From positions 1,302,001 to 1,366,000 of the forward strand of contig CM075981.1 in NCBI GenBank assembly GCA_038087875.1: a stretch of DNA of 64,000 nucleotides, given 5' to 3'. The notes below the pieces were generated by a model. That model searched no databases and had not been told where the DNA came from. It saw nothing but the letters and a program-made list of their open reading frames with translations. Position numbers and translations under genes: made by a program. Position 1 is the stretch's first letter. The number at the start of each line of letters is the position of its first letter. The DNA comes from Malacoraja senta (Eukaryota). Positions 25,701-62,480 of the stretch are shown piece by piece.

Positions 25701-28700
25701 AATATGGAGATACAGGATGGTACAACTATGGAATTGCAACATCTTTCGAGGATCCATTGTTTCCCGTACATCTCCAAGTATCTGACGGTACGTTTCGCAG
25801 CGATTGACTTGACGTCTCTACTAAAATGCCTGATCCATGTTTTCACCGGGAAGGGTCAGGGCAGCACCGATATCCCGAGGCGCTGCAGCAGTGCAGAGGC
25901 CTGCGGGGAGCGGGCGGGGGTCGGGAAACCCCACTCATGTTGCTCTCACCCAGTGCGGGCTCTGGCCCACTGAGCGGCCACCCACTTCAAGTGGGATGCT
26001 CAGCACATTTCCCTTCCTCTAAACTGTATGAAATGTCACCCTGTCAGATGTTTGCATTCCGACTCAAACTAATAATCCGACAGATCAGTGAGAAACAATT
26101 GGGCGGGAAACGGCCAGCCCGTTTCCCGCCCACACCTCAGGGATCAGTCACCCCCTCCCCACCCCGCGCTTTCCCTCTCTCCCTCTTCCCCTACAATGCG
26201 CCCCCACCCCCATCAGCCACTGTCCACCCACTGCCACGCAGCCTCTCCACCCGGACATTTCCCCGGTTTTAACCAGAATAAACTCATCTATCAGCCCATC
26301 AGCCCAACTCCCTGGTCAACGACTCGTCCTTTCCCACCCAAACCAACCTGTCCCCAGGTACGTTCCCCTACAACTGCAGGAGATGCAACACCTGTCCCTG
26401 TACCTCCCCTCTCTACTCCGTTCAAAGAACCCAACAGTCTTTTCGGGTGAGGCAGATGTTCACTTGCATCTCCTTCCACCTCATCTACTAAATCCGCTGA
26501 TCCAGGTGTGAACTCCTATATATCGGTGAAACCGAGCGCAGACACGGAAATCGTTTCGCTGAACAACTCCGCTCAGTCTGCCTCGGCCTACGCTACTTAC
26601 CGATTGCTAAACACTACCAACACTTCCCCCTCCTATTCCCAAACAGACCTTTCTGTCCTGGACCTCCTCCACTGTCAGAGTGAGGCCAAACGCAAATTGG
26701 AGGAAGAGCACCTCATATTTCGCTTTGGCAGCTTACAACCCATCGGTTTGAATATTGACTTCTCTAACTTCAAGTAACCTTTGGTCTACTACTGTCTCCA
26801 TCCCGCCCCCATCCTCGTCTCTCATTAGTTTCACTGTCATCCTGATTTAGTTTACAGATTGTATGCCTTGTTGTCACATTCCCTTCAGCTGACAATGATC
26901 CATTCTACATTTTCCTCTAGCATTTTCACCTTTGATCACTTGTTTCCACACCTGACCTTTCCATTTCTCTTCTGTCCCTGTCCCATGACTCTCGGGCTGA
27001 AAAAGGGTCTCGACCCGAAACGTCACCCATTCCTTCTCTCGAGAGATGCTGCCTGCTCCACTGAGTTACTCCAGCATTTTGTGCCTATCTTAAAGGGATC
27101 GTAAATAGTTTTCCGCAGCAGAGATGGTTAAGTATGTGTAGACATGTAATGGGGGAAATGGAACTCAGTGCATTGTGGTGATGGATCTGAAATCACATTT
27201 GAATATCTAGACTATGTTCGTAGTTTTACCACTGTTGACACATGGTCTAATTGCATCCTGATGATAGTTGATCGGCATAAAATAGGGAATGAATTTGGAG
27301 CATATAATCCAAGACACCTTGACCGAAGGACAGAGGTTTCAACACCACCAGGAAGTTAATTCTACACTTTTAAAATATGTTTACAACTGAGGTGGAACAG
27401 GACTGTCGTCTCATTGTGTCAGTTCAAATATTCCCCGCATTTGTCCGGCTCAACTCTTGTCGCAAACCCAACAATTCCCCGGAGTCTGAGACTGAACCAC
27501 TGTCCTCGCTCGATTCACCCACCCCCAACTCTCTCTCCATCATCTCTCCGATCCGCGGCCCAGTCGTGCTGAAATGTCCAGGGCAAGCCGGGGTCATTGG
27601 GAATAGAACATGTTCCCGATGAGCAGCTACCCATTTGGCTCCTAATTCAGTTTAGTTTATTGTCACATGTACTGAGATACGGTGAAATGCTTTTTTGTTG
27701 CGTGCTAACCAGCCTGCAGAAAGCAATACGTGATTACAATCGAACCTCTTACAGTGCGTAGATACATGAAAAGGAAATAACGTTAAGTGTAAGGTAAAGC
27801 CGGCAAAGTCCGATCAAGTGTCGTCCGAGGTTCATCAAAGGGGTAGATAAAAGTCTAGCACTTCTCTCTGTTTGTGATACAATGATTTTGATACCTGATA
27901 ACAGCTGGGAGAAACTGCCCCCGAATCTGTTTATCACTCACCGAAAGTAAGCATGCAGGTGGAGCAGGCAGTGAAGAAAGCTAGTGGCATGTTGGTCTGC
28001 ATAACAAGATGAGTTAAGTTTGGGATCCTTCTGCAGTTGTACAGGGGCCTAGTGAGACCACATCTGGAGCTTTGTATGCCGTTTTGAACAACAAATTTGC
28101 GAATTCTGGATGATCAGCGATGATCACATTGAATGGCGGTGCTGGCTTGAAGGGCCGAATGGCCTACTCCTACACCTATTGTCTATTCATTAATTGTCTA
28201 TTATTGCACCTAAAGCTTATATATTACGTTTTGATATGTATTTTATGGTATTTTTATATGCAATGTGTTTTATGTGATGTCGTCCGTCGTCTGGACCTTG
28301 AGTCCGATATAAAGTTTAATAATAATAATAATAATATTTGTACATCTCCATCATGCCCGTTGCCAGAACTGCCATGTCTGCCACTATACCAGTGCACAGC
28401 AGAACCATCTCTCTCTCTCAGAAAGCTCCTTCTCCTTACAATTTATCAGATTTACAGGGCCCTTCAGTTGTACAGGGCCCTAGTGAGACCACACCTGGAG
28501 TTTTGTGTGCAGTTTTGAACTGCAGATTTGAGGAAGGACATTTTTGCTATNNNNNNNNNNNNNNNNNNNNNNNNNNNNNNNNNNNNNNNNNNNNNNNNNN
28601 NNNNNNNNNNNNNNNNNNNNNNNNNNNNNNNNNNNNNNNNNNNNNNNNNNNNNNNNNNNNNNNNNNNNNNNNNNNNNNNNNNNNNNNNNNNNNNNNNNNN

Positions 28701-31700
28701 NNNNNNNNNNNNNNNNNNNNNNNNNNNNNNNNNNNNNNNNNNNNNNNNNNNNNNNNNNNNNNNNNNNNNNNNNNNNNNNNNNNNNNNNNNNNNNNNNNNN
28801 NNNNNNNNNNNNNNNNNNNNNNNNNNNNNNNNNNNNNNNNNNNNNNNNNNNNNNNNNNNNNNNNNNNNNNNNNNNNNNNNNNNNNNNNNNNNCTCCACCT
28901 CTCATATTGAAAAGCAAGGCCAATCTAAAATTGAGCAAGAGAACATTATACCTGTTAGAGAAACTGGGCGCAGTGGTTTCCTGATGATTGTTTTCGGGTG
29001 TTACTTTTGTATTTGAAGTAAACGCTATAGTTGTTAACGACTCACTAATAGATTCAGGTTCTGTTGATAAAAGGAAATAAAAGACAATTAAAGATAGACA
29101 AAAAATGCTGGAGTAACTCAACGGGACAGGCAGCATCTCTGGAGAGAAGGAATGGGTGAAGCACTGCCTGCACTTCAGACCGGAGACCGTCAGACTGGCT
29201 GTGAAGCAATATGACACATCATGGGACGATTTAAGTTTTCTTTATATAATTTTCAAAATGTATCTACTTTCATGAATCAGTTCAATTCCTCTCAGTTCTG
29301 AAAGTTTCCCCTTTCAGTTTCAGATGCAGTGAAGGGAGAGACGTATGTAAGAGGAGTTCTGGGAAGAGCGATCACAATCGATTGTAACTATGCAGCAGAG
29401 TACCGCTCACACACAAAATACTGGTGCCGTGCTCGGACTCACCAATGTTCAGATATGGTGGAAACAAATGGGCAACACGGACGGAGTGGAAGAGTGTCAA
29501 TCACAGATAACCCGGCACGAGGAATATTTACTGTGACTGTGGAGGATCTTCACTCTGGAGATACAGGATGGTACAGATGTGGAATTACTACACCTGGCGA
29601 CCATCCAATGTTTCCCGTACATCTCGAAGTATCTGATGGTACGTTTCGCAGCGATTGACTTCATGTCTCCACTGAAATGCCTGATCCATGTTTTCGCCGG
29701 GAAGGATCAGGGCAGCACCGATATCCCGAGGCTCCGCAGCAGTGCAGAGACCTGCGGGGAGCGGGCTGGGGTGGGGAAACCCCCATTCATGTTGATCTCA
29801 CCCAGTGCGGGCTCTGTCCCACTGAGCGGCCACCCACTTCAAGTGGGACGCACAGCACATTTCCCTGCCTCGGAACTGTATGAAATGTCACCCTATCAGA
29901 GGTTTGCAATCCGACTCAAACTAATAATCCGACAGATCAGTGAGAAACAAGGGTTGCTCGCGTTCTGAATACCCAGAGATTTTCTTTTAAAGGGAATCAG
30001 TCCCCAGAGCTCAACAGACTGCGTTCAGTCCTCTCGGGGCAGACCAGCCCGCTTCCCGCTTCCTCCCCACCCCGCTCGCTCTCTTTCCCTCTGTCCCGTC
30101 AATGCGCCCCGAGGCCCAGCAGCCACTGTTCACCCACCGCCCGGCAGCCAGCCAGTCTCTCCACCCAGACATTTGCCCGGTGATAAGCAGAATAACCTCA
30201 TCTTTCGCCACATCAGCCGTCGCATACAAGATATAATCATCCGACATTTTCGCCACCTCCTACGGGATCCCACAACTAGCCACATCTTTCCATCTCCACC
30301 GCATTCAGCTTTCTGAAGAGACCGTTCCCTCCGCGACTCCCTGGTCAACTCGTCCTCCCCCCGAAGGACAGAGGTTCCAACATCACCACGAAGTTAATTC
30401 TACACTTCTAAAATGTGTTTACAACTGAGGTGGAAGTCAGGATTGTGGACTCATTATGTCAGTTCAAATATTCCCTGCATTTGTCCAACTCAACTCAATC
30501 GCAAACCGAACAATTCCTCGGAGTCTGAGACTGAACCACTGTCCCCGCTCTATCCACCCAACCCCAAATTTCTCTCCATCCTCTCTCCAATCCGCGGCCC
30601 AGTCGTGCTGAATTGTCCAGGGCGAACCGGGGTCATTGGGAATAGAACCTGTCCCCGATGAGCAGCGGGACATTTGGCTCCCAAATCAGTTTAGTTTATT
30701 GTCACGTGTACCATGGTACAGCGAAAAGCTTTTTTGTTGCGTGCTAACCAGACAGCAGAAAGACAATCCATGATTACAATCGATCCTCTTACAGTGCGCA
30801 GATACATGAAAAGGAAATAACGTTTAGTGCAAGGTAAAGCCAGCAAAGTCCGATGAAGGGAATTCCGAGGGTCATCAAAGATGTAGATAGGGGTTCAGAA
30901 CTACTCACTGTTTGTGGTATGATGATTCAGATGGCTGATAACAGCTGGGAAGAAACTGTCCTAGAATCTGACAGTGTGCGTTTTCAAGCTAGTAACGCTC
31001 TCCGGTAACGAAGCCGCTTTATTGTAAACCGCCGCCCTCTGTCCTCATTCAGGGCTATGTAAAGGCAGTGGCGGCGGTGAATGTCTAAACACGGGTCCGG
31101 CCCAGTGTCGGTTGAGAAATGAATGTTGGCAGCGCAGCCGGCGGCACCGCCATTGAAATAGCAAAGTGGGGTATTTCTGTAGGGTGAGAGGACGGGCACC
31201 GCCTGGGATTGTTGAAAGGCAGCTCCTGCAACACTGCCACGCTCCCTCAGTACCGCACTGCGATCCCAGCCGAGTTTCTGCTCAGGGATCTGGAGTGGGA
31301 AGTGAACCTAAATTGTACTGACCCGGGGACAGAACACTGACACAACTGGTACAATAACTGCACTGCCTGCACTTCAGACCGGAGACATTGTCCGTAAAGC
31401 AATATGACACATCATGGAACGATTATGATTTCTTTCGTGTAATCTTCCAAATGTATCTATTTCCAGTAAACAGTTCATTTGTTCTCCATCTGAAAGTTTC
31501 TCCCCTCCATTTCAGCTACAGTGTGGGGAGAGAGGAATGTAACAGGAGTTGTGGGAAGAGCGATCACAATCGATTGTCACTATGCAGCAGAGTACCGCTC
31601 ACACACAAAATACTGGTGTCGTGGGAGGAGTCGCCAATGTACAAATATAGTGGAAACAAATGGGCAGCACGGAGGGAGTGGAAGAGTGTCAATCACAGAT

Positions 31701-34700
31701 AACTCGGCACGAGGAATGTTTACTGTGACTGTGGACGTTCTTCACTCTGGAGATACAGGATGGTACAGCTGTGGAATTACTACATCTGGCGACCATCCAA
31801 TGTGTAACGTACATCTCCAAGTATCTGACGGTAGGTTTCGCAGCAATTGACTTGACGTCTCCACTGAAATGCCTGATCCATGTTTTCTCCGGGAAGAGTC
31901 AGGGCAGCACCGATATCCAGAGGCTCCGCAGCAGTGCAGAGACCTGCGGGGAGGGGGCGGGGGTCGGGAAACCCCACTCATTTTGCTCTCACCCAGTGCG
32001 GGCTCTGTCCCGCTGAGCGGCCACACCTCAAGGATCATCACTCCCTCCCCACCCCGCTCTCTCTCTCTCTCTCCCTCTGCCCCGTCAATGCGCCCCCACC
32101 CCCAGCAGCCACTGTCCACCCACCGCTGGCAGCCAGCCAGCCTGTCCACCCGGACATTTCCCCGGTGGTAAGCATAATAAACTCATCTTTCGCCCCATCA
32201 GCCGTCGCACACAACATATAATCCTCCAACATTTTCGCCATCTCTAGCGGAATCCCACAACTAACCGCATCTTTCCATCTCCACCGCTTTCTGCTTTCCG
32301 AAGAGACTGTTCCCTCCGCAACTCCCTGGATTACTCGTCCTCGCAGAGATGCAGATGAGCCGGTGAGATATCAACCGGACGATTCGGGCTGAGATAAAGG
32401 GCTGCTGAGATTTAGCAACTGTTTATTTGTTAACTGTTCATACAGGTGACGGAATGTTTGCTCCATTCCCACAGAACCTGTGTCTGTTCCTGTGCTCAGA
32501 TATCTGTCAGCAGCAAATGCCTCACGTCTCGGCGGCTCAGTGTCAGTGTCCTGTGAGGCTGTCGGTGGATCCCTTCCCATCCATTACACATGGTTTGAGA
32601 AGAACGAGCATTGGGTTTCAACGATCTTGAAAAGCAATCAACTGGATCTGAGTTGTGAAATCCTCGGAGGTCAAAACCGTCAATTTTACTGCACAGCCTC
32701 AAATAACCGTGGGACAAAATCCGGTGAAATGCTCAACGTGAAATTCTTCAAAGGAGCAGGAACGTGCAGTTATGTGACAGAAATCAATAATACAGGTGAG
32801 TGTTATTTTCCCGTGGGAATACTGTTTCACAATTCCTCTTGTGTTCTTGGAGCTGCTGCTTTTCGCCTTGTGGTTATGTTCGTGGGTTCTTGGTATTTGC
32901 AAACGGCATCATTGCAGCCACCGTGAGCTCATGGTGTAAAATGCGAGAGTTTGCTTGGGGGACTGGCAAATAATTGCCTGATGCTTTCACCTGGGAGCTG
33001 ATGAGCAATTTCAGCAAAGGAGAGAAATAAATGCACTTATCACAACAGGTTAAGTGCAATACATCAAATTGCTGCCTTCTGCCTTAAAAACGATTTTCTG
33101 GCTGCCGCTTAAGATCTCAAAGTCAATTTGAGAAAGAGAAATGCATTCTGTTTGGATCCATCATCATTTAAAACCAAGGATGGACAATTTCATGATCATG
33201 TTCATGATTTTATCTCTTTTAAATAAGTGTGAATCACTGGAACTTAAGTAATCTCACAAAATTAACGTGGAATCTACTTGGACGACACTCCATCAATATA
33301 ACCCTTACTTTTGTCAGATAATTTTGTATCCCAGTAGGTGTGGGAACGCTCAGATTGGAAGTCCATAAGTGTGAATGGTTTACATCAGCGAGACCAAGCG
33401 CAGCCTAGGCCAGTGCTTCTGAAACTATTTCAGCGTCGTTCACCCTTGAGTCTTTATCACAAAATTTCATTCACCCTCGACTAAATGTTCTTATGTTTTT
33501 TAGGTAATTTTCATCTTATTCTCCCTTGTGTATAATTGTATATACAATTTATATTGTCACATGAGCAAAAAATACAATTCACTCCAAAGTAATTTCATTC
33601 ACACTTGGGTGAACCATTCATCAGTTAAGAAGCATTGGTCTAGGCCACAATTTCACTGAACACTTGTGCTTGGTCTGTCATGACCCAGAATCGCGCTTGA
33701 TAGACACCCCATCCTCAACCTCCCACGCTGATACAGAGCAGCAGCAATTTGCACCATCTGCAAGATGCACTGCAGCAACTCACCAAGACTCCACCGACAG
33801 CGCCTTCCAATTGCAACAGGCTCCGTGTTCAATGCATCATTCTTCACCATTCACACCCACATTGGCTGGGAACGCCTGTGCAGATGGTGAGGGACGGTGT
33901 ACAGTATCTGTCTCTCATCGCAATCAAGGTGGAATTCAACAGTTAACAAAATGGGCGGTCTCCCCTGTGCACACTGATGTATACGATAATGTATATGTTT
34001 GTAAAAGGCTAATTTTGTTCTTCAATTCATGAAATATGTTTCCTTCAGTTTCAGGTGCTCTGTGGGCAGAGAGCGAAGTAGGCGGGGTTGTGGGAAGATC
34101 GATCTCAATCGATTGTCACTATTCAGCAGTGTATCGCTCACACATAAAATACTGGTGCCCTGGGACAAGTCGCCAGTGTACACATGTAGTGGAAACAAAT
34201 GGGAAATATGAACAAAGCGGAAGAGTGTCAATCACAGATAACCCGGCACGAAGAATATTTACTGTGACTGTGGAGGATCTTCAATCTGGAGATACAGGAT
34301 GGTACAGTTGTGGAATTACTACACCTGGCGAACCAACATTTAAAGTACATCTCCAAGTATCTGAAGGTAGGTTTCTCAGTGAGTGACTTTATGTCTCCAC
34401 TTTGGCATCCGCACAAAATATTTGGTAGGTGGGAGTCTGGTGCACAGTTCTGGTCGCCGCTTTATAAAACAAAAGATGTGAAAGGTTTGGAGAGGTTGCA
34501 GAAAATGTTCACCGCGATATTTAGTTGTCGTTTACAAATGCAACATGGAAACGGATCCTGCGGCCCACCGAGTCCACACCAACTAGCGATCTCCGGTCAC
34601 ACTAGTCCTGTTATTCCACTTTCCCATGCGCTCCCTACACACAATTCTGCAATACCGCCATTCAGACACGTCATTAATGAGGAGAAGGAGCTTTCTGCCG

Positions 34701-37700
34701 GGCAATTTAGCTGTCGCTTTGAAATGTAACATCTGAGTAGCTGACATTGTCCTCATCTGTACTGGAGTGTGTCCCTGTCGATTTCCTTCATAATTGCACT
34801 CCTGCATACACAGTTTGATTTTGAATAGACAAACGGGCAGCTTCCTTGTTGCTTTGAATGTCTGACAATGTTGCACAAACGATGCTCCCTTTTCCTGCTG
34901 GCAATTCCCGAAATGTAAAAGAGAATCCAAGATTTGTCTGATGATTTGTCTGATTTGTGGTCAGTTTTAATCACCATGTTATAGGAAAGATGCTATCGTT
35001 GGATAGGGTGCAGAGAAGACTTACAAGGATGTTGCGATGAGTTGAGGGCCAGACCTACAGGGAGGGGTTGAGCTGACTAGGACTTTATTTCTTGGAGCGC
35101 AGGAGGATGAGGTGTGATCTTATGGCAGGTACAAGATCTTGCGAGGAATAGATCGTGTAAATCCACAGGAATAGATCGTGTAAATGCGCAGGAATAGATC
35201 GTGTAAATGCACATACTCTGAGTCTTTTGCCCAAAGTACGGGGATCGAGAACCAGAGAACATTGTTTTAAGATAAGGGGGAATGATTTAACAAGAACCTG
35301 GGGGTAACGTTTTTACACAAAGGTTGGTAGGTATATGAAACAAACTGCCGACGGAAGTAGTAATGGCAGGTTTTCGCAATATTTAAGTAAAATGTGGACA
35401 GGTTCATGAATAGGATAAGTTTAGAGGGTTAAGGGCCAAACAAGTGCAGGTGGAACTAGTGTAGATTCGGCGTGTTGGTCAGTGCGTGCGAGTTAGACCG
35501 AAGGGCCTGTTTCTACGCTACATGACTCTATGACTCTATGTAGATGGATGGGTCAGTTTCCAACATGGCGGGTCTGGCTAAGGTACAGAGATGGTGGATA
35601 TTTGCGAGTGTTGGATTTTCAGATGTTCACTCAGTGTCTGACTGGTTGCTCCTTTCCCACAGAACCCGTGTCTGTTCCTGTACTTGGATTTCTGTCACCA
35701 GCCAATGAACCCTGTCTCAGAGGCTCAGTGACAGTGTCCTGTGAGTCGGTCCGGGGATCCCTTCCCATTAACTACAGCTGGTATGAAAAGACCCCATCTG
35801 TGGATTCAAAGATCTCAGACAGCAATGCCCTGGATCTACATTGTCAATCCTTCCAACACCAGCACCATCAATATTATTGCACGACTTCAAATCAACATGG
35901 GTTACAATCCAGTGAAATGGTCAACGTGTCCATCTCCAGCAGTGACGTGCCCTGCAGTATTCTAGCGAAAATCAACGGCACTGGTAAGTAGTGGAGGGAA
36001 TGTGGAGAAGAAAGGGAAGTGGTTCATAAGATCATATGATAGAAGCAGAAATAGACCATTCAATCATGGCTGATCTATCTTCCCCTCTACACCCCATTTT
36101 CCTGCCTTGTCCCCGTAGCCCCCGACGCCCTGATATCCATGCACCTTATTTAATTAATTTATCAAGATTAAAATGATGGAATTAAGGTCCATTTGTCAAT
36201 ACTTGGTTGTTGGGTTATAGAAATAGATTTCCCAGTGCTGGTGTAGGCCTGCTTCCCGGCTAGAACATCCTCTTATATTTACACAGCTTTAAACTGGGTT
36301 TGCAGTGACATCAGTCCAAGCACTTTCACTTTCCAGCATCTCCACATGACCGACGCTCAAATATGGGAAGGGAACAGAAATTATCAGTAAATGTGGCCAC
36401 AGTTAACTCCTAGAGGACTGTATCAGCTTTGGTCCACTGTGTTAATGTTGACCATTCAGTACCATCGATACTAATCCCATTTACCAGCCCCTCATCCACG
36501 GTCTTCTCAGACTTGACAATTCAAGTGTCCCCACTATCTAAGTTTAAAAATACTTCTTGCTCAGATACCCTCCAAATATTCTACTCCTTAACCCAACCCT
36601 GTGTTCTCCACTTCTTCGCACATCTGCTGCACTGATTTCCCACGAAGTACCCTGTCTCCTTTATCTTACTTTCTTTATCTTTGTTACTTTATTGTTATAG
36701 TAATGGTGCATACAACGAAATTCAGGCGCACAGCTGAAATGTACAAGATAAAAATAACCATAAAATAACATCAAAAAAGTGAGAATAATAAAAATACACA
36801 TACACACATATTCACATACGCATACACATTATGCCTACGAATGCACCCGTACCAGAATATCCATTGTGTATCGAACCGATGTTTGGTAGTTCATGTTGGT
36901 TGTTTAAAGATTTAGGTCAAAGATACAGTGCGGAAACAGGGTCCACCCCGACCAGCGATTCTCGCACATTTAACACTATCCTGCACCTACTAGCGCATTT
37001 TTTTTACATTTACCATGCCAAATAACCAATAAACATGTCGTGGGTTGGTTCAGAAGATCACAAGTGATAGAAGCCCAAATGGACCATTCAATCATGGCTG
37101 ATCTATCTTCCCTTCTTCACCTCATTCTGCTGCCTTCTCCCCATAACCCCCGACACACTGAAATCCATGCACTTTATTTAAGTAACTTGTCAAGTTTAAA
37201 ATGATGAAATTATGGCCCATTTGTCCATACTTGGTTGCTGTGCTCCAGAAATAGATTTCCCGGTGCTGGTGTAGGCCTGCCTCCTGGCTAGAACTACCTC
37301 TTATGTTTACACAGCTTTATACTAGGTTTCCAGTGACATCAGTCCAAGCAAATTCATCTACCCACCACCATCTCCACATGATCCACACACAGATATGTCA
37401 AGGGATCAGACATTATCAGTAAATGTGGCCACAGTTAACTCCTTGAGGACGTTATCAGATTTGGTCCACTGTGTTAATGTTGACCATTCAGTAGTATCGA
37501 TACTAATCCCATTTACCAGCACGTTGTGGCAATTCAGGTACCTTCACCTTCTAGAATTAAAAATATTTCTTGATACCCTTGAAATATCCTGCTCCTTAAC
37601 TTAACCGTATGTTCTCCAATTTTACACATATCTGTCGTGCACAATTTTCCAAAAATAACCTCTCTATGCTGCTCACAGTTTTGCACACCTGTAATAGGTT

Positions 37701-40700
37701 CCCCCTTCCTCACCTGTCATGCATGGAATTTTATAAAACCCTTAGCCAGCCTCTCCCCATCATTGTAATCTTTCATACCAAGCAACACTCCACTCAAGTG
37801 AAATTGCACCGTTTAGATTAGTTTATGGATACAGGCTCTTCGGACAACTGAGTACACACCGTCCAGTATTCACCAGTACACAAGTTCCATGGAGACAATT
37901 TACATAATCCAATTACCCTGCAAACCTGCACGACCTTGGAATGCGGGGGGGGACTGGATCACTTGGAGAAAACCCACGCGGTCACAGGGAGGAGGTACAA
38001 ATTCCGTACAGACAGCATCCGTAGTCAGGATCGAACCCGTGCCTCTGTCGATGTAAGGCAGCAACTCTACTGCTGCGCCACTCTGCCGTCTACACCTGGC
38101 GCCAGAGTTGTTACCAGCAATCCTGCTTGTTATCTGGACTACACTTCTTCCCACCCTGCTTCATGTAAGGACTCCATCCCCTACTCTCAATTCCTCCGTC
38201 GACGCCGCATCTGCACCCAGGATGAGGTATTCCATACCAGGGCATCGGAGATGTCCTAATTCTGCATGGAACGGGGGTTCCCCTCTTCCACCATAGATGA
38301 GGCTCGCACCAGGGTCTCTTATATACCCCGTGAATCTGCTCTCTCTCACCCCATCCGCCCACTCGTAACAAGGGCAGAGTCCCCCTTGTCCTCTCATTCC
38401 AACCTACCAGCCGTCACGTACAACAAATAATACTCCGTCATTTTCGCCACCTCCAACGTGACCCCACCACTTGCTCTTGCAACCGCAAGAAATGCTACAC
38501 TTGTCGCTTTACCTCCCCCCTTGACTTAATTCAAGAACCCAAGCAGTCTTTCCAGGTGCGGCACAGGTTCACCTGCACCTCCTCCAACCTCATTTATCGC
38601 ATCCGCGGCTCTAGATGTCAGCTGCTCTAAATCGGTGACACCAAGCGTAGGCTTGGCGATCGGTTCGCGAACACCTCCGCTCGGTTCGCAATATCCAACC
38701 TGAATTCCCGGTGGCTCAGCACGTCAACCCCCCCCCCTCCCATTCCAAATCCGACCGTTCTGTCCTGGGCCTCCTCCATGGCCAGAGTGAGGACCACCGT
38801 AAATTGGAGGAGTAGCACGTCATATTTCGCTTGGGCAGTTTGCACCCCAGCTGCATGAACATTGACCTCTAATTTCAGGTAGTCCTTACTGTCTCCTCCA
38901 CTTCTCAGCTCTCCCTCAGCCCTCTGGCTCCACCTCTTCCTTTCTTCTTCCCGCTCCCCCCCCCCCACCACACACACACATCTGTGTGAGGAAGGGTTTC
39001 GGCCCGAAAAGTTCCTTATTTCCTTCGCTCCATAGATGCTGCCTCACCCGCTGAGTTTCTCCAGCATTTTTGTCTACCTCCTGCTTGTAATGATAACATC
39101 TCCCATTTGCTACAAATCACACTGAAGATTATTTACCCTGTCTGTTAAGCCTATCAACTCCTTACATAGAATCATAGAATCATAGAATCATAGAAAGTAG
39201 GTGCGAGAGCAGACCACCAGGTCCATCGAGCCCGCACCGCCATTCGCTCATGGCTGAACACCAAACAAACAAACACCCCCACCCACAAACAGTAGACACA
39301 AGACACAGAACACAAGACACTACCCTCCCCTTTATAGCGCTATCACCCCTCTCCACCCCAAGAACCGAGTGATCTCCTGGGGGAGGCAAAAAACCGGATA
39401 AAAACCCAGGTCCAATTCGGGAAAAAAATCCGGGAAATTCCTCTCCGACCCCAATCCAGGCGATCGACACTTGTCCAGGAGATCACTCAGGTCTTACTAT
39501 ACTAACCCTACCTAGGTCCATATCCCTGCCCTCTCCCCGTAGCCCCTTATCCCCTTGGCAGCTAAAAAACCATCGGACAACCATACTCCGTTGTTTTACT
39601 GAAAAGCAGTGAAACTGACTTTTATTTCCTTTTTCCAACAGGTCATGAATATTCTTGTGAATATTCCTATGCAAGGTAAACCACAATTTTTCCAATGAAG
39701 TTACAATGTACTACTTGATGGTGTTTTGATTGGGAATGCTTTATTTGGGAGAAAGTTGTGCCTTCCTTTCACTGACATTAAATGCCGTGAGTGTATTGAT
39801 CTGAATGTACAGTGGCACAGCCTGTCGAGCCACAGCCTCACCACGCCACGAGATAGGTTTATTAGGTGCTGTCTGTGCGTGGTCTGCATGTTTTGCCTTT
39901 AATTGTGTTGGTTTCATTTAAGTGCTCCAGTTTCCTCCCAGCTCCCAAAGCTGTGCCAGTTGTAAATTGCCCCGTGTGTACAGGACAGCGGTTGAATCTG
40001 TGGAAATGGGGTGGTGCGGGGGAAGGAGGGTGTTTGACGGTGGTGGTAGTTGATGAGAAAGTGGAGAAAATAAAAAAGGGATTTACACAGGAACCGTGTG
40101 AATGTAGTTGACTGTCGGCACAGACCTGCAGGGCCAAATGGCCTGTTTCTATACTGTGTTTCTCTATGGGTCTTTGATCCAATTAAAGCAAACATCGAAG
40201 CATAATCAAATGTTGTAGGTTCCGCCATGATCACATTGAATGGCGTTGCTGGCTAAAGGGGCCAAATGGCCTACCCCTGCACCTATTGTCTATTGTGTAT
40301 TGTCTATTATTTCATTTGCCTGACACCAAATATAAATTTATCTCTTAAATATTCTTTAATAATATGTATATAACTTGCAAACCAGTTATGATTTAACTCT
40401 TCAGAAGGGGCTTTACACCGGGTTTACGTCTCATTGTGTTTTGTATATGCTTGGATGATAAGAACAAGTTCCTCCATTTGCTGCTTTTCCGAGCGCGTTC
40501 CCTGCAGAATTCACCATGGCTTCTCCATCACTGACCTCATCGCAAGCTGTGAGATGAATATAGTTGCCAAACCCAAGTCTTGCAGTTTAGCTTTCCTGTG
40601 ACGCTGTGGTGTGGTGCTGATAGGAAAATGCATTGTGAATTATGGGCTTAGACACCCCCCTTGATATCACTTGTGGCAACACCTTGCCATTGATGGAGTC

Positions 40701-42509
40701 ATGCACCAAAAAATCGCTGGCGTAGAATGTGAGAAAACAGTCTTGAATCAGACGGAATACAGCGAACTGAGTTAACACACGCTCTCTTACACATTGAACA
40801 ATGAAAGCATTAAAAATAAATATCCCTGAATATTCCATCAAAATATAGTCATGAAAGTGGGAACAGTTTGTTATTTATCTTATTACAATTGAAATAGATC
40901 TGGCTTTCTATCACACTCTTGTGTTATGCTTGCGTTAGGAAATAAGAACATTAATAAAAGCCACGCCGTTATGAGCGAATCTTTAACCGATTTTTCGAAC
41001 ACGATTCCTTCATGCACACACCTACCGCGTTAATCCAAGTTATATCGAGGGTGTGAGATTAAGCATTATCATTTTTAATTTATTTTATTACTTGGCCTCA
41101 TCTGTTTCCATATTTATTGCCCCACCTCCCTTCCACCATCAGAATTGATCCCTTTTTATTATTCCTGCCTATCCATATGGATTTTATTATAATCTTCCTT
41201 GCAGCTGCATTTTCTTTCTTCCACGGTATTACACTGTTCTTTGTATCCTTACACATGCCCAGATTCCCCCTCTCGTGACTCCTAGTCTGACGAATGGTCT
41301 TGACCCGAAACATCATACATGGGGTCGTGCACCAAAAATGCGCTGGCACAGAAAGTGAGAAAACAGTCTTGAATCAGACCGAATACATCGATATGTTTTA
41401 ACTGACGCTCTCTTACACATTGAACCTTGAAACCTCCCTCGTTGTGTTTCTCCAGCATTTTGTGTCTATCTACTCTGGATTCACTGCTCCATCTAATGAC
41501 TTATTTCTGTCTTCTCCGAATCCATTTAACCGTGTTATCTCTCATTCCCAGCCTTGCAGCAATGAGATCAGTAATTGGTGATCATAAGTTGTCCCCACAC
41601 CGCCCCAGTCCAACACCCGTTCTTTCTCCAAGCTGATCTCCATTGGCTCTGCTGCTTGGCCCCGCTCCACTTCACCAAGATTATGAAGCAAATAACAGGT
41701 ATATGTTTCAAAGATAAACAGTATCGTTTCCTCCCAGTGATTCTGCATCTCTTGCCCTTTGCCTAGTTACATCGCATGGAATGTGGGGCGCTGGATGTTC
41801 TTTCTCCTGCTTGTGATCTGGAGTATCTCAACCGCGGTGTTCACAAGAGGCTCTAATGTAGGATTTCTTGTCATCATGATCATAAATTATAGGAGCAGAA
41901 TTGGGCCATTCAGCCCATTATATCTAATCCGCCTCAAATCATGGCTGATCTATCCTTCCCTCTCGATCCCATTCACCTTCATTCTCCCCATAACCCTTGA
42001 CATTCTTATTTATCAAGAATATGAAAATCTCTGCCTTAAAAATATCAATAGATTTGGATAGATCCAAAATACTGGAGTAGCACAGCGGGACAGGCAGCAT
42101 CTCCGGTGTGAATTGACTTGGCCTCCACAGCCATCTGTGGTAATGAAATCCATAGATTCACCACCCTCTGACGAAAGCAATCCCTTCTCTTCGCCGAATG
42201 TATCTAAACGGTTTCCATTAATTCTTTCAAATATCCTGTGCTTTGATAGAAACAAAAACCGTGCACGTTTTCATATCCTGACGTCAAATCAAATATCCAT
42301 GTAGATGATATCACGAGGTTGCGTGCAGGGTGGATTTCTGTGCCCGGTATGGGTTCGTTGGGGTCCATCTTCCAGCCAGCAATGTGTTGGGAGTGGTCGG
42401 TTCAAATAAAGCGTGGTTCCCACTGTCAATGAGTCTGATGACTTCACATTGTCTTTTGCAGAGACGCGATGAGTCTGAACCTCGGCACTTGGCCCACGAA
42501 TTACAATGA
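19738..42509 (+). CDS. Spliced gene model: six-Ig-domain CD300/pIgR-like (MDIR-like) type I membrane receptor, L-V-V-V-C2-V-C2-stalk-TM-short tail, about 708 aa
   Basis: Hand-built join: 19750..19786 (in-frame upstream ATG at 19738), 25467..25787, 29318..29638, 31516..31830, 32475..32795, 34049..34366, 35663..35983, 39642..39675, 41767..41857, 42462..42509. All introns are GT-AG. Junctions are phase 1 through the Ig exons, then phase 2 and phase 0. Total 2127 nt = 708 codons plus stop, with no internal stop. Exon connectivity is inferred, and extra small stalk exons cannot be excluded. Confidence 0.7.
20668..25282 (+). mobile_element. Full-length CR1-clade LINE, nearly intact, in intron 1
   Basis: TSD TGTACT at 20662..20667 and 25283..25288; empty site at about 57396..57401. 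ORF1 (21020..21974) has a CxxC..CxxC finger, leucine zipper and SGNH esterase (GDSII, HVGTND, DGLH) with a +1 frameshift in a G7 run at 21873..21879. ORF2 (22082..24958) has APE endonuclease and RT (FADD) with a single in-frame TAG at 22754..22756. Tail (TTTCTATG)3. Confidence 0.96.
25467..25787 (+). CDS. V1 exon, V-set Ig domain of CD300/pIgR type; canonical F-strand Cys replaced by Tyr
   Basis: CTTCAG acceptor, GTACGT donor, 321 nt, phase 1-1. Translates VSGARWEPKHVRGVVGRAFTIDCHY...KYWCRGWSRRC...GRVSITD...FTVTVEDLQYGDTGWYNYG...VHLQVSD. The WC-x5-C second disulfide is the CD300/pIgR/TREM signature. Confidence 0.9.
26270..27090 (+). mobile_element. Penelope-like fragment in the V1-V2 intron (duplicate at 58380..59200)
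   Basis: RFTCISFHLIY.IR.SRCELLYIGET...KLEEEHLIFRFGSLQP.GLNIDFSNFK followed by the terminal repeat. Confidence 0.85.
27945..28550 (+). mobile_element. Scrambled CR1 RT/3' fragments next to an N block (duplicate 60052..60657)
   Basis: Two partial LQLYRALVRPHLE segments and a CR1 3' UTR piece. Confidence 0.7.
28551..28892. other. N block, 342 bp
   Basis: Undetermined or masked bases. Confidence 1.
29318..29638 (+). CDS. V2 exon, V-set Ig domain of CD300/pIgR type
   Basis: TTTCAG acceptor, GTACGT donor, 321 nt, phase 1-1. IDC...YWCRARTHQC...DTGWYRC with all four cysteines present (ORF 29329..29658). Confidence 0.92.
30150..30360 (+). mobile_element. Short Penelope-like linker fragment (related copies at 32130..32340 and 63310..63520)
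   Basis: DIIIRHFRHLLRDPTT.HIFPSPP.SAF.RDRSLRDSLV-type sequence between RT and GIY-YIG. Confidence 0.7.
31516..31830 (+). CDS. V3 exon, V-set Ig domain with an extra Cys
   Basis: Only the distal of the two tandem AG acceptors survives (ccatttcag). GTAGGT donor, 315 nt, phase 1-1. IDC...YWCRGRSRQC...DTGWYSC...PMCNV. Confidence 0.9.
32475..32795 (+). CDS. C2a exon, C2/I-set Ig domain (Fc-receptor-like)
   Basis: CCCACAG acceptor, GTGAGT donor, 321 nt, phase 1-1. EPVSVPVL...VSVSCEAVGGSLPIHYTWF...FYCTASN...TCSYVTEINNT; the GSLPI.Y.W motif is typical of FcR-like C2 domains. Confidence 0.9.
34049..34366 (+). CDS. V4 exon, V-set Ig domain of CD300/pIgR type
   Basis: CCTTCAG acceptor, GTAGGT donor, 318 nt, phase 1-1. 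VSGALWAESEV...IDC...YWCPGTSRQC...DTGWYSC. Confidence 0.92.
35663..35983 (+). CDS. C2b exon, C2/I-set Ig domain, intact
   Basis: CCCACAG acceptor, GTAAGT donor, 321 nt, phase 1-1, open frame EPVSVPVLGFLSPANEPCLRGSVTVSC...YYCTTSN...VPCSILAKINGT. Confidence 0.9.
38127..39080 (+). mobile_element. Penelope-like element fragment (duplicate of 229..1162)
   Basis: Same RT and GIY-YIG remnants, with additional stops. Confidence 0.88.
39168..39570 (-). mobile_element. 403 bp 3' fragment of the same CR1 subfamily as the 20668 element, antisense, copy-B specific
   Basis: Reverse complement of about 24897..25280 with an (ATTCTATG)n tail. CAT duplicated at 39165..39167 and 39571..39573. Empty site ttacatcggac at about 1247..1257. 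Confidence 0.92.
39642..39675 (+). CDS. Cys-containing stalk mini-exon (G)HEYSCEYSYA
   Basis: Polypyrimidine tract plus CCAACAG acceptor and AAG|GTAAAC donor. 34 nt, phase 1-2. Homologous to 1326..1374 with an in-frame 15 nt deletion. Confidence 0.65.
41767..41857 (+). CDS. Transmembrane exon (S)YIAWNVGRWMFFLLLVIWSISTAVFTRGSN
   Basis: CTTTGCCTAG acceptor in phase 2, matching the mini-exon. Hydrophobic stretch of about 22 aa with an Arg near its N-terminal end. Donor AAT|GTAGGA is weak at the -1 position. Confidence 0.75.
42462..42509 (+). CDS. Terminal cytoplasmic exon RRDESEPRHLAHELQ*
   Basis: GTCTTTTGCAG acceptor in phase 0, matching the TM donor. TGA stop, followed by an AT-rich 3' UTR and AATAAA at 42912. 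Confidence 0.65.
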   Translation, partial: RRDESEPRHLAHELQ

Positions 42510-42911
42510 AGACACCTAACTTGCACCAACAGTGAGGGAATTGTGCATCGCGATGTAATATTTATGCATCATCCTGCTTTGTCAAATGATATCAATTGGA
42601 CAGAATATACGTCTCTTGCAATTCAACTAGGTTGAAAATACGTCTCTTGCATTTCATGAAAGTGACTTCAAAGCAATTTTCCAAACTTTCCAAACCATAT
42701 CTGTTTCCAAAACTCTTTTCCCGCACTGATCTTAATTGTTGTCACCTCTTCCAAGGTTTCTTTCGTCACCTTCGAACTGTTGTTTTAACCTTTGCATGGT
42801 TGCCGTTGCTCCAGCATCTTATACTCTGTTTAACTATATTATATGCATTCAACTTCCTGGAAAAAATGTTTTTCACTGATTAATGAATAATAATGCATCA
42901 CAAAGCTTCTT

Positions 42912-43915: not shown

Positions 43916-46790
43916 CTATTTTTTTTGATTAAGTGATGGAAAGATACAGCATGGATACAGACCATTTGGCCAATCGTGTCCAAGAGAACCAGCAATCAAC
44001 CCTTTCACACTGGTTCTATATCATCCCATTTTCGCGTCTTTTGAGTACCGTAATATTGATAAACATTTTAATGCTGCCACGAGTTATTCATTTAGTCCAC
44101 TGTACAGATGTGTTAAATGACTATAAATAATGGCCACGGTGGCGCAACGGTAGAGTTGCTGTCTTACAGCGCTTGCAGCGCCGGGGACCCGGGTTCGATA
44201 CCGACGACGAGAGCTGTCTGTACGTTCTCCTCACGACTGCGTGAGTTTTGTCCGAAATCTTCGGCTTCCTCCCACACTTGGATTGCTATCAATGTAAATT
44301 GTCCTCAGTGTGTGTGGGATAGTGTTAATGTATGGGGATTGCTGGTCAATGTGGACTCGGTGGGCCGAAGGGCCTGTTTCCGCGCTGTACCTCCAAACTA
44401 AACTAAACTAAACTAAATTAGTGGAAAGTCTATTCTTGTGCAGAACAAAATGGTTGAGTTGCAGTTTGCAAAGCACGGGGTGTGAAACTGCAAATATATT
44501 GTGTTGCTTTCCTCTGTCTGACTTGTGATGTAACCCCGGCCATGAAAGACCTATGAAGGATGTTGTTTGAAAATAAAAAATGGTGACCTGCAAAAACGGA
44601 GTAACCACCATAAAGTTCGGAAAGATTCAAAGATTTGGCTAAAATGTCCCACTGACAAAGATAAATATTGTCCACACAGTAAGCGGGTTGAGGAGGAAAT
44701 GAGACTAGAGGCTGCTTTGAACTCATAACCCCCCAGGTCAGGGATATCCGAGGGGTGCTGAATAGCCAGATATACTTGCAGATTCTGTGGTCACACTGAT
44801 GCTGCCTGGCTCGTTCAACGCGAGCTTGTTAATGGTCTAATGTGAGGAATGATCTTCAACCGGAGCTTTTCCCCACTGCAAGATATCCCAAAGTGCCTCA
44901 CAGATAGTGAGAGGTAAACGGTTCGAAATGCCACAGATAGACATAAAATAGTGGAGCATATCAGCGAGATAGGCAGCTTCACTAAAGGAAAAGAATGGGT
45001 CACATTTCGGGTCGATGCCACTGTTGTTTTTAGAGGTGGGTGCTGGCTTCCAATGTCCTTTAATCTAATATGTTCAAACAGTCATTTCTTCCTTTACACT
45101 GAATTGTTCTGCAGTGCTGACACTTTGCTCGCGTTGCTGAAACAAGGGTGTGTAGATTCGTATCTCTGAACCGCATCTTGCAAGCACCTGTTGTAACACT
45201 GTTTGCTGAGCAGTGTTTGCAGAAGTCATGGGTCACAGGCGAATGAAGACAGAATTTAAATTGTTTTGCTGCATCGTCGGTTCCTCTCTGCAGTGTTGTT
45301 AGTTGGGCAAGTAAACAGGAAATAGCTCCCAACAAAAGATCCTTTACTGAGGGTTGCCAGCGCTCAGCTAACATCAGCGGCGGACACATCAGTGTGTTAC
45401 ACCCATGCCACGTGATGTACAGCATTGCCACTGATATACACAACCCGAATAAACTGCACTGTTCCCCTTACACACCCAGAACGATAGCCAGCAGCAGATA
45501 TAATGTTATATCATAATGCAAATGGTTGCATACGGAATGAAATCGTTCCAGGCAGATGTACAAAATCAGCCAATGGAATGTACATGAACACAACTCTGAT
45601 AATTTATTCGCTCTGCATTGCAAAGAAGACAAGTTAACAATTCAATTCACCGTGCATATTCTACCTTGGTTTAACTTCACTAAGTGTATCACTTCGCCCT
45701 TATTTGCGGTACATTACACCGGTCAGTTAGACTCCACATCCCGCTTTCCCAGCTGATCTCCATCATGTGGTAATTCTAGATACATTTCTTCACAGTCCAC
45801 AACACCATTAATTGTCATTTTCAAAACATCAATATCATGACAATAATGTTTCAAAGTATCCAACGTATCATTGTTTACATGAAGGGTCCCGACCCGAAAC
45901 GTCACCTATCCAATTTCTCTAGAGTTGCTGCCTGGCCCGCAGAGTTTCTCCTGCATTTTTTTTGTCTGCCACTGTTCAGTGTTAACAGATTCTGAGTACA
46001 CAGATAACCGCCGCTACATCCTTACGGATACATCATACTCGACGGAGTGGCTGAAGCAGCTGCAATAACAGCGTGTATCGGGCACTTGGACAGGCCCATG
46101 GATAGGGAATGTGGTCAGTTTTAATCACCATGTTATACGAAAGATGCTGTCAAAGTGAATAGGGTGCAGAGATGACTTACAAGGATGTAGCGATGAGTTG
46201 AGGGTCAGACCCACAGGGAGGGGTTGAGCTGTCTAGGACTTTATTTGTTGGAGCGGAAGGAGGATGAGAGGTGATCTTATGACCGGTACAAAATCATGCG
46301 AGGAATAGATCGTGTAAATGCACAGGAAAAGATCGTGTAAATGCACATACACTGAGGCATTTGCCCAGAGTAGGTGAATCGAGAACCAGGGGACATTGTT
46401 TTAAGATGAGGGGAGATTGATTTTACAAGAACCTGGGGAGTAACGTTTTTGCACAAAGCTTGGTAGGTATATGAAACAAACTGCCGACGGAAGTAGTTAT
46501 GGCAGGTTTTCGCAACATTTAAGAATAATTTGGACACGTACATGAATAGGATACGTTTGGAGGGTTACGGGCCAAGCAAGGGCCAGTGGAACTAGTGTAG
46601 CTTGGGCGTGTTGGTCAGTGCGGGCAAGTTAGACTGAAGGGCCTGTTTCGACGCTGCATGACTATGACTCTATGTAGATGGATGGGTCAGATGCCAACCT
46701 AGCGGCTCTGGCTAAGATACAGAGATGTTGGATATTGGCAATTGTTTGATTTTCAGATGTTCCCAGCGTCTGACTGCTCCTTTCCCACAG

Positions 46791-48452
46791 AACCCGTGTC
46801 TGTTCCTGTGCTCGGATTTCAGTCACCAGCCAATGACTCCTGTCTCGGGGACTGAGTGACAGTGTCCTGTGAATCGGTCCAGGGATCCCTTCCCATTAGC
46901 TACAGCTGGTATGAAAAGACCCCATCTGTGGATTCAAAGATGTCAGACAACAATGCCCTGGATCTACATTGTCAATCATTCAAACACCAGCTCCATCAAT
47001 ATCACTGCACAGCCTCAAATAAACGTGGATCAAAATCCAGTGAAATGGTCAACGTGTCCATCTCCAGCAGTGACGTTCCCTGCAGTTTCCCAGTGAAAAT
47101 CAACGGCACTGGTAAGTCGTGGCGGGAATGAGGCAAAAGAAGGGGCATTGAGGGTGGGGTGCTTCATAAGATCACGTGATAGAAGCAGAAATAGACCAGT
47201 CAATCATGGCTGATCTATCCTCCCCTCTTCACCCCATTCTCCTGCCTTCTCCCCAAAGCTCCGACACCATGAAATCCATGCACGTTATTTAATTAATTTA
47301 TCAAGATTTATATGATGGGATTATGGCCCATTTGTCAATACTTGGTTGTTGGGCGCCAGAAATAGATTTCCACGTGCTGGTGTAGACCAGCTGCCAGGCT
47401 AGAACAACCTCTTATGTTCACACAGCTTTAAACTAGGTTTGAAGTGACATCAGTCCAAGCATATTCACTTTCCCACCACCATCTCCACATTATCCACACT
47501 CAGATATGGCAAGGGAATGCATATTAGCAGTAAATGTGGCCACAGTTAACTCCTTGACAACGGTATCAGATTTGGTCCACTGTGTTAATGTTGACCATTA
47601 AGTACCATCGATAATAATCCCATTTACTAGCACCTCGTCCATTGTGGCAATTCAGGCACCTCCATCTTCTAGGTTTTAAAATATTTTTGATTGCCTTGAA
47701 ACATCCTGCTCCTTAACGTAACCATATGTTCCCCACTTTTACACATATCTGCCGTGAAAAATGTTCCAAAAATTCCCTGTCTATGCTGCTCACAGTTTTG
47801 CACTCCTGTAATAGACTCCCCCTTCCTCACTTGTCCTGCATGGAATTTAATAAAACCCCTATCCAACCCCTCACCATAACTGTAATGTTTCATCCCAAGC
47901 AATACTCGTCTCCGGTGAAATTGCACCCTTTAGGTTAGTTTATGGATACACGTTGGAAACAGGCTCTTCGGCCTACTGAATACACAACGTCCGGTAATCA
48001 CCCGTACACTAGTTCCACAGGGACAATTTACAGAAGCTAATTAACCTGCACGACTTTGGAATGCGGGGGGGAAACTGGAGCACTTGGAGAAAACGCACGC
48101 GGTCACAGGGAGGAGGTACATATTCCGTGCAGACAGTATCCGTAGTCAGGATCGAACCCTAGCCTCTGGCGCTGTAAGGCCGCAACTCTACCGCTGCGCC
48201 ACCGTGCCATCTACACCTGGCGCCAGAGTTGTTACCAGCACGCCTGCTTGTCATGATAACATCTCCCATTTGCTGCAAATCACACTGAAGATGCATTACC
48301 CTGTCTGTTAAGCCTATCAACTCCTTAAATCGGACAACCATACCTACTTGTTCAACTGCTAGTGAAAAGTAGTGAAACTGACTTGTATTTCCTTGTTCGA
48401 ACAGGTCATAATATTATTGTGAAAATTTGATAACATCCAATTACTCTTCAAG
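46791..48452 (+). pseudogene. Second dead duplicate of the 3' module: C2 exon 46791..47111 and mini-exon 48405..48452
   Basis: Same TGA at 46853..46855 and same 1 nt mini-exon deletion as the 8707 copy. Confidence 0.85.
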
Positions 48453-49941: not shown

Positions 49942-50799
49942 AAATAAGAATATTTATAAAAGCCACGACGATATGAGCGAACCTTTAACCGAATTTTCGA
50001 ACACGATTCCTCCATCCACACACATACCGCGTTAATTCAAGTAATATCGAGGGTGTGAGATTAAGCATTATCATTAAAAAAATAATAATTAATTGGCCTT
50101 AATTTTCTCCATCTCCCTTCCACCATTAGCAATGATCTTGTTTTATTATTCCTGTCTATCCATATGGATTTTATTATAATCTTCCTTGCAGCTGCATATT
50201 CTTTCTTCCAGGGTATTACACTGTTTATTGTATCCTTCCACATCCCCAGTTACCCTCTCCCGTGATTCTCAGTCTGAAGAAGGGTCTCTACCCGAAACGT
50301 CACGCATTCCTTCTCTCCAGAGACGCTGCCTCTCCCGCTGTGGTTCTCCAGTATTTTGTGTATATCTATACTGTATTCACTGGATTCACTGCTCCACCTC
50401 ATGACTTATTTCTCTCTCTTCTCCGAATCCATTTAACCGTGTAATCTCTCATCCCCAGTCTTGTAGCCATGCTCCAGCAATGAGGTTAGCAATTGGTGCT
50501 TCTTAATAAATGGTTGTTGTCAATAAATGGTTTGTCTAATTTGTTTTGTTTAGACTGCAACTTTTGTGATGAAGAACAGACTGCAATCAGGCTGCTGGAT
50601 AATCCTCGTGTTGCCAAACATTAAAGACGTTTAGGAAAGGCATTCAAACAATCGTTCAGACCATGCTATCCCATCAGGACAAAATTATGCAACGACATTG
50701 TTCTAACTATTAGCCTTATTTTTCCCTCCACATACGCTGACTGACGCGCTAAGCACATCCAACATCTGCAGATCTCATTGCGGATATGCAATTAATTTT

Positions 50800-57576: not shown

Positions 57577-57897
57577 TTTCAGGTGCAGGGTGGGTACCGA
57601 AGCATGTAAGAGGTGTTGTGGGACGAGCGTTCACAATCGATTGTCACTATGAAGCACGGTACCGGTCAGACACAAAATACTGGTGTCGTGGGTGGAGTCG
57701 CCGGTGTACAGTTTTAGTGAAAACAAATGGGCTACACGGACGGAGTGGAAGAGTGTCAATCACAGATAAACCGGCACTAGGAATATTTACTGTGACTGTG
57801 GAGGATCTTCAATATGGAGATACAGGATGGTACAACTATGGAATTGCAACATCTTTCGAGGATCCATTGTTTCCCGTACATCTCCAAGTATCTGACG
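57577..57897 (+). CDS. V1 exon of the downstream paralog; same Cys-to-Tyr change
   Basis: 321 nt, phase 1-1. Differs from 25467..25787 by two amino acids (GWVPK versus RWEPK) and one silent change. Confidence 0.9.
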
Positions 57898-62369: not shown

Positions 62370-62480
62370 CAATATGACACATCATGGGACGATTTAAGTT
62401 TTCTTTATATAATTTTCAAAATGTATCTACTTTCATGAATCAGTTCAATTCCTCTCAGTTCTGAAAGTTTCCCCTTTCAG

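Follow-up and report, generated by a model that had tools for sequence, protein, structure and literature searches.

An arginine near the outer membrane face in a predicted MDIR5-type receptor of the skate Malacoraja senta

The window analysed here, 64,000 nucleotides of the Malacoraja senta genome (contig CM075981.1 of assembly GCA_038087875.1, positions 1,302,001 to 1,366,000 of the forward strand), contains a receptor gene, gene B, which ends with a transmembrane (TM) exon and a tail exon. Positions are counted from the first base of the window. The two exons encode the TM segment and the cytoplasmic tail of an intact gene of the MDIR5 type, a type within the modular domain immune-type receptors (MDIR). 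With a conserved arginine in the TM segment and a tail free of tyrosine motifs, the product is most likely an activating-type receptor that docks to an adaptor by this arginine. The exons are:

41767-41857, plus strand: TM exon of gene B, 91 nt, with ag/gt splice sites and a phase compatible with the stalk exon; its product aligns with MDIR5 and has homologous TM regions in 47 segments of related proteins
42462-42509, plus strand: last coding exon of gene B, encoding 15 tail residues (RRDESEPRHLAHELQ) and the stop codon TGA; C-terminus and stop are as in XP_078277019.1 and MDIR5

The TM exon lies between a c-t-a-g acceptor and a g-t-a-g-g-a donor. Its first base is the third base of a codon that is split 2+1 with the stalk exon. 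Such a start is unusual among genes of the immunoglobulin (Ig) superfamily and arises here because the upstream stalk mini-exon shifts the splice phase from 1 to 2. The product reads (S)YIAWNVGRW, followed by 17 hydrophobic residues and TRGSN. All hydropathy windows of 19 to 23 residues contain the arginine, located 3 to 7 residues inside the outer end, and the optimum window likewise holds it close to this end; the hydrophobic stretch behind it ends with T-R. The tail exon starts behind a t-t-t-t-g-c-a-g acceptor, and its TGA occupies 42507-42509. An AATAAA follows at 42912, about 400 nt 3' of the stop codon. The complete cytoplasmic tail has 19 residues, and its spliced translation contains no tyrosine, no immunoreceptor tyrosine-based inhibitory motif (ITIM) and no immunoreceptor tyrosine-based activation motif (ITAM). 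A preliminary description of this DNA had reported a TM with the pattern W-N-V-G-R-W (N-x-x-R), a 19-residue tail lacking tyrosine, ITIM and ITAM, and a near-identical upstream paralogue at 3460 and 4155. The spliced translation was the same, and the paralogue differs by one base in each exon. The exons at 41767-41857 and 42462-42509 are a genuine membrane anchor and short tail and not a chance open reading frame, because their phases fit the stalk and C2 exons and the product aligns end-to-end with MDIR5 and with RefSeq skate models.

Ten joined exons, including these two, give an uninterrupted frame of 704 codons in which every junction is ag/gt. The order is leader, V-V-V-C2-V-C2 (six Ig domains), a Cys-bearing stalk, TM and tail. 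The upstream exons are:

19738-19786, plus strand: leader exon (MDKTMWIPILLISSLP) with a phase-1 donor
25473-25787, plus strand: first V-type Ig exon, in which tyrosine replaces the second canonical Cys (W-Y-N-Y-G), missed by a Cys-Trp-Cys pattern search
29324-29638, plus strand: second V-type Ig exon, a V-set-type domain in Pfam, open frame
31522-31830, plus strand: third V-type Ig exon, Pfam match, open frame
32475-32795, plus strand: first C2-type Ig exon, Pfam match, open frame
34055-34366, plus strand: fourth V-type Ig exon, pIgR/CD300 type, with the Cys-Trp-Cys pattern and matches in Pfam and among PDB sequences; the HMMER query
35663-35983, plus strand: membrane-proximal C2-type Ig exon, FcR-like, Pfam match, phases fit
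39642-39675, plus strand: stalk mini-exon, 34 nt, (G)HEYSCEYSYA(S), with the membrane-proximal Cys and a change of splice phase from 1 to 2

Pfam assigned V-set to four exons and Ig_3, Ig_2 or Ig_C17orf99 to the two C2 exons. The V domain has the four-Cys pattern of pIgR and CD300. Its matches among PDB sequences were CLM-1/CD300f (5e-19), CMRF35-like molecule 6 (9z0m, 1.7e-18) and the CMRF35-H antigen (2q87, 2.1e-18). The match to pIgR (1.5e-49) spans several domains, and pIgR domains scored better than the CD300-type ones. The CD300-type ectodomain proposed in the preliminary description is thus right for the V domains but does not describe the receptor as a whole, which has six Ig domains, including an FcR-like C2 domain next to the membrane. 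Mammalian CD300 proteins and pIgR share the four-Cys V domain with gene B. In CD300 proteins a mucin-like stalk carries a single V domain, and activating forms have a more central Lys or a Glu, whereas gene B has six Ig domains, two of them C2, and an outer arginine as the TM charge. pIgR has a long tail and no charged TM residue.

The first V exon (W-Y-N-Y-G) otherwise has an open frame and good splice sites, and a 98.9% identical copy lies near 57573-57896. It may be a skipped exon or encode a V domain without the core disulfide. A search of short transcript-derived proteins with the C2 exon yielded a genomic read-through fragment and two gene models only; the gene B copy is presumably expressed. 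As a finding against its reading, the preliminary description had named a different TM or a longer tail with an ITIM. A tblastn search with the tails of MDIR3 and of the relatives P0001, P0003 and P0013 found no other TM exon and no ITIM exon of a type known from the family on the plus strand of the window, which leaves gene B no candidate exon of this kind within reach.

The relationship to MDIR5 was evident beyond the membrane anchor. With the fourth V domain as query, a full HMMER scan returned 2576 relatives. The matches of a second search, with the receptor part of the closest model, included two named proteins of the clearnose skate, MDIR3 (ABC86797.1, with an ITIM tail) and MDIR5 (ABC86800.1 / A0S0F2; Cannon et al. 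2006, PMID 16738934). The family proteins collected for comparison number 245. Unlike the genome-derived models, the MDIR3 and MDIR5 entries are not linked to a genome contig, as expected of cDNA-derived deposits, and they serve as the closest stand-in for a cDNA check of the exons. The last 478 residues of the gene B model (227-704) are 77% identical to MDIR5 in an alignment of 486 residues that runs through the final residue. TM and tail match at 38 of 45 positions and stop at the same place. Both proteins have V-C2-V-C2, the E-Y-S-C-E stalk, the W-x-V-G-R-W TM and a tail ending with AHELQ. Gene B differs by two additional N-terminal V exons, by N instead of K three residues before the arginine (R-3) and by a stalk that is five residues shorter.

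MDIRs are described as combining pIgR/CD300/TREM-like V domains with FcR-like C2/I-set domains in one chain (PMC3031540). Gene B shows this mixture of V and C2 domains in Pfam and PDB matches, the end-to-end likeness to MDIR5 includes stalk, TM and tail, and the gene is part of a large, tandemly arranged multigene family that comprises both activating-type and ITIM-type receptors: the 245 family proteins contain 47 TM segments of the Arg type, and many have ITIM tails. By sequence, gene B is an intact six-domain paralogue of the MDIR5 type and a new member of the MDIR family. Its domain combination is not new, as the family was named in 2006 and is annotated across many elasmobranch genomes. 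TM and tail of this type are found as well in RefSeq models called 'polymeric immunoglobulin receptor-like', 'Fc receptor-like protein 5' or 'CMRF35-like molecule 2', which belong to Rhinoraja, Leucoraja, Amblyraja, Hemitrygon, Hypanus, Mobula, Pristis, Narcine and many sharks.

Models such as XP_078277019.1 and XP_078276457.1 of Rhinoraja longicauda and XP_032898776.1 of Amblyraja radiata have the stalk, the type of TM and the short tail in common with gene B. RefSeq models differ in how many Ig domains they contain, and several are chimeric (a TRIM69 fusion, two receptors joined). The closest one, XP_078277019.1, is 74% identical to gene B in its C-terminal 170 residues; a word-indexed search with its 61-residue C-terminus returned the self-match only. 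Its N-terminal half is TRIM69-like (RING, B-box, coiled-coil and SPRY) and is fused to an MDIR5-type C2-V-C2-stalk-TM-tail, probably an annotation merge of neighbouring genes. In an R. longicauda locus taken from CM130186.1 (positions 16575-16626 and 19241-19300 of the locus), an insertion of about 2.6 kb breaks the TM exon of XP_078276457.1 after W-K-V-G-R-W-L-L-F-L-L-L, and the RefSeq model splices over it. In the comparison of exon and intron conservation with the R. longicauda locus, introns also aligned, at 73-84%.

The proteins with the 47 homologous TM segments belong to many sharks, to skates, stingrays, mantas and sawfish, to an electric ray and to a sturgeon. Relative to the arginine at position 0, the consensus is:

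outer side: -8 S; -7 Y/F; -6 M/I/V; -5 I/V; -4 W; -3 variable; -2 V; -1 G/I/L
inner side: 0 R; +1 W; +4 F; +6 and +7 L, L; +18 and +19 T, R

The arginine and the tryptophans at -4 and +1 are unchanged in all 47 segments. Circularity was controlled with a position matrix that lacked the columns -4, 0 and +1 and was scored on all proteins. Windows above 10 bits on this matrix had W, R and W in 47 of 47 cases, and neighbouring positions varied freely. This invariance under a matrix that omits the three columns indicates that the arginine and its flanking tryptophans are under strong constraint. In contrast, R-3 is the most variable position of the segment. The 44 tabulated segments have K (18), D (7), S (7), N (5), A (2) and one each of E, T, G, Q and M at this position; MDIR5 has K. 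The inner end of the TM reads F-T-R in 36 of 44 relatives and F-T-R-G in gene B. Among Arg-type relatives the tail is 3 to 26 residues long and in no case contains an ITIM or ITAM. Of 33 complete relatives, 18 have the stalk Cys (E-Y-S-C-E), which might form a disulfide close to the membrane.

A second conserved element is located in the tail, about 6 to 10 residues past the membrane. The motif [DN]-E-S-[DE]-[PH] occurs from the sharks Heptranchias and Mustelus to stingrays and skates, in relatives including P0016, P0167, P0169, P0174, P0178, P0186 and P0194. Its conservation suggests a function, for example as a phosphorylation or sorting site. To our knowledge, the motif has not been described so far. 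Beyond the elasmobranchs, a pIgR-like protein of the sturgeon Acipenser oxyrinchus (KAK1138222.1) has two TM segments with D-I-W-S-Y-L-R-W-I-L-F. On the elasmobranch matrix lacking the W, R and W columns, they still reach 26 to 27 bits, and the TM type may therefore have existed before cartilaginous and ray-finned fishes diverged.

N-x-x-R TM segments are an established mark of FcR-gamma-coupled receptors of the leukocyte receptor complex (LRC), as the preliminary description stated and the literature confirms (PMC2413239, PMC4536121, PMC6557307). That description had read the gene B TM as an LRC-type docking module coupled to a CD300-type ectodomain, which suggested FcR-gamma/CD3-zeta-like signalling in a cartilaginous fish. 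The published markers of the LRC subtype are the arginine, an invariable motif residue, D-Y-T at the N-terminal end and acidic residues at the C-terminal end; for the invariable residue, the text reads 'Asp at the position -2' (PMC6557307). The skate TM segments were compared with LRC features as given in this published description. The arginine in the outer part of the TM coincides (3 to 7 residues from the outer end, 47 of 47). An invariable Asn is not a family feature: N is present in gene A and gene B but in only 5 of 44 tabulated segments. In place of D-Y-T, gene B has S-Y-I and the family S-[YF]-[MIV]-[IV]-W, of which only the aromatic residue at -7 coincides, and the inner boundary is basic (F-T-R) instead of acidic. 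A PDB sequence search and an ESM Atlas feature search with TM and tail of MDIR5 returned generic single-pass matches at chance level and no LRC protein.

With a variable R-3, no D-Y-T and a basic inner end, the N-x-x-R reading is coincidental, and the claim of an LRC-type TM on a CD300-type ectodomain did not hold. Judged by the alignments, the Asn at R-3 is an incidental state of a variable position, a coincidence of the gene B copy outside the docking motif, and the TM is a family-specific module, Y-x-x-W-x-V-x-R-W-x-x-F, rather than an LRC module grafted on a CD300 ectodomain. True homology to the docking module of LILRA, GPVI, NKp46, OSCAR and FcalphaRI, which a CD300-type ectodomain would share or have acquired (exon shuffling of the kind seen in the Xenopus FCRL and SLAM genes would be one route), is improbable. 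It would agree with N-V-G-R in both gene A and gene B, the FcR-like C2 domains adjoining the membrane, the Tyr/Phe at -7 as in D-Y-T, and the occurrence of N-x-x-R TM exons in several Xenopus Ig receptor families besides the LRC (PMC4536121). It is opposed by N in just five homologous TMs and K in MDIR5, the replacement of D-Y-T and the acidic end by S-[YF]-[MIV] and F-T-R, the invariant tryptophans at -4 and +1, which have no counterpart in the published LRC description, and the failure of the profile-free searches to return an LRC protein.

The LRC receptors LILRA2, PIR-A, NKp46, GPVI, OSCAR, FcalphaRI and TARM1 and the TM1 of Xenopus XFL nevertheless resemble the skate family in the outer arginine, about 16 to 18 hydrophobic residues, a short motif-free tail and ITIM-bearing sister genes. 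The skate family differs from them by the unconserved Asn, the missing D-Y-T and acidic inner residue, the tryptophans flanking the arginine and the pIgR/CD300-type V domains. The geometry is similar to that of FcR-gamma-coupled receptors, yet with a family-specific outer-Arg TM.

Adaptor docking through the arginine is the most likely mechanism, and a reasonably probable one. The receptor is a type I membrane protein with pIgR/CD300-like V domains interleaved with FcR-like C2 domains. Within Y-x-x-W-x-V-x-R-W-x-x-F, the arginine would be buried by about one to two helical turns from the outer face of the membrane and form an intramembrane salt bridge with an Asp of a disulfide-linked dimer of an ITAM adaptor. 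The adaptor would provide signalling and possibly surface transport, as for the activating partners of paired receptor families. In agreement with a paired receptor family, the best matches of the ectodomain overall carry ITIM tails. Such ITIM-tailed relatives with similar ectodomains make the activating-type, adaptor-dependent reading reasonable. Outer-Arg TMs pair with FcR-gamma in mammals and, by co-expression, in Xenopus (PMC2413239, PMC4536121). We infer both the pairing and the adaptor: because of the depth of the arginine charge, an FcR-gamma/CD3-zeta-like partner would be favoured over a DAP12-like one.

Several points weigh against this reading. The abstract of the 2006 MDIR paper reportedly groups MDIR5 with the forms that lack characteristic activating or inhibitory motifs, and its authors may have placed the arginine outside the membrane. 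An arginine so near the outer boundary might do without a partner by snorkelling to the headgroups. With the first V exon lacking its canonical Cys, the mature transcript may differ from the ten-exon model. The choice of adaptor cannot be read from the sequence; FcR-gamma accepts receptors with highly diverged TMs in published cases (PMC6557307).

The receptor might also work without an ITAM adaptor. The arginine would then lie at the membrane interface, and the protein could be a non-signalling binder or decoy, form a disulfide-linked dimer by the conserved stalk Cys, or act via the acidic, Ser-containing tail motif. The shallow position of the arginine, only 3 to 7 residues inside the hydropathy optimum as counted from its outer end, fits this explanation, as does the reported classification of MDIR5. 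Constraint beyond the arginine is also suggested by the stalk Cys, which 18 of the 33 complete relatives have, and by the tail motif, which recurs between cow sharks and skates. An arginine and two tryptophans invariant in 47 segments amid free variation are hard to explain for a passive interfacial residue, and a basic residue on the extracellular side conflicts with the positive-inside rule unless it is used. The geometry equals that of receptors shown to require FcR-gamma (PMC2413239). An adaptor-free receptor is therefore rather unlikely, and docking by the arginine is preferred.

More tentatively, and possible rather than probable, the TM exon with Y-x-x-W-x-V-x-R-W-x-x-F and the tail with [DN]-E-S-[DE]-[PH] may form a distinct and ancient module, independent of the LRC, that docks MDIR receptors to FcR-gamma. 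The module ranges from cow sharks to skates, perhaps to sturgeon. If this is true, pairing of an outer arginine with FcR-gamma is older than the LRC and than the split of cartilaginous and bony vertebrates, and MDIR5, reportedly described as a form without signalling motifs, would count among the activating receptors. The analysis adds a further intact member of the Arg type to the skate MDIR cluster and corrects an attractive but wrong claim of LRC homology. It also sharpens the TM signature of the family: it consists of an invariant arginine with two invariant tryptophans, a variable 'N' position and a tail motif conserved across sharks and skates. The signature is a concrete target for the question of the ITAM adaptor in paired receptors of cartilaginous fish and bears on a single or repeated origin of outer-Arg docking in vertebrates.

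Most of the window is a tandem segmental duplication of about 38.3 kb with about 96.8% identity, and the near-identity of the upstream paralogue, gene A, to gene B fits this duplication. The gene A exons corresponding to stalk, TM and tail are:

1326-1374, plus strand: stalk mini-exon of gene A, 49 nt, GLEYSCENSITSNYTA
3460-3550, plus strand: TM exon of gene A, one base different from 41767-41857
4155-4202, plus strand: tail exon of gene A, one base different from 42462-42509

The single differences change N to K in the TM exon and L to S in the tail exon; both are non-synonymous, and T at 41857 and T at 42490 distinguish gene B from gene A. Flanking and intronic sequences have 20 differences across about 960 bases. 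The stalk mini-exon is 15 nt shorter in gene B (34 versus 49 nt), in frame, and the Cys of H/L-E-Y-S-C-E is retained in both genes.

In such a birth-and-death cluster, gene B might be a silent or decaying duplicate, with exons that are intact owing to recent duplication. At 96.8% identity over about 38 kb, intactness has low power as evidence of function. Neither of the two exon differences between the copies is synonymous, a canonical Cys is missing from the first V exon, a long interspersed nuclear element (LINE) occupies intron 1, and C2 and stalk remnants and pseudo-exons lie nearby. The open frame and ag/gt sites in ten of ten exons, the in-frame deletion in the stalk and the polyadenylation signal 3' of the stop codon make decay very improbable, and gene B is taken as an intact receptor gene.

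The LINE-type retrotransposon comprises open reading frames of 303, 268 and 733 amino acids (endonuclease and reverse-transcriptase-like) at 20981-24955 on the plus strand; the insertion is missing from the paralogous intron near 57400. Downstream, the first V exons and introns of a further gene, gene C (57396-64000), are 98.9 to 99.8% identical to 25283-30837 of gene B, above the 96.8% found elsewhere. A second C2 exon and a stalk mini-exon (Y-Y-C-E-N...) follow each tail exon at a distance of about 4 to 6 kb, at 46790-47113 and 48412-48450 and at 8706-9038 and 10327-10365; they partly duplicate the gene's 3' half. A separate TM for the pair at 46790-48450 was considered and rejected, as the counterpart of 41315-42905 has shrunk to about 200 bp (50302-50498). 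Both pairs lack a membrane anchor and are orphan exons.

Remnants of an inhibitory-type receptor are located on the minus strand. An ITIM-bearing cytoplasmic exon at 34677-34910, in the intron between the fourth V and the second C2 exon of gene B, is 77% identical to the tail of XP_078277136.1 and has two in-frame stops. The start of an inhibitory-type TM exon is present at 28936-28992 and at 61047-61103, adjoining both assembly gaps, of which the one at 28551-28892 was kept as in the assembly.

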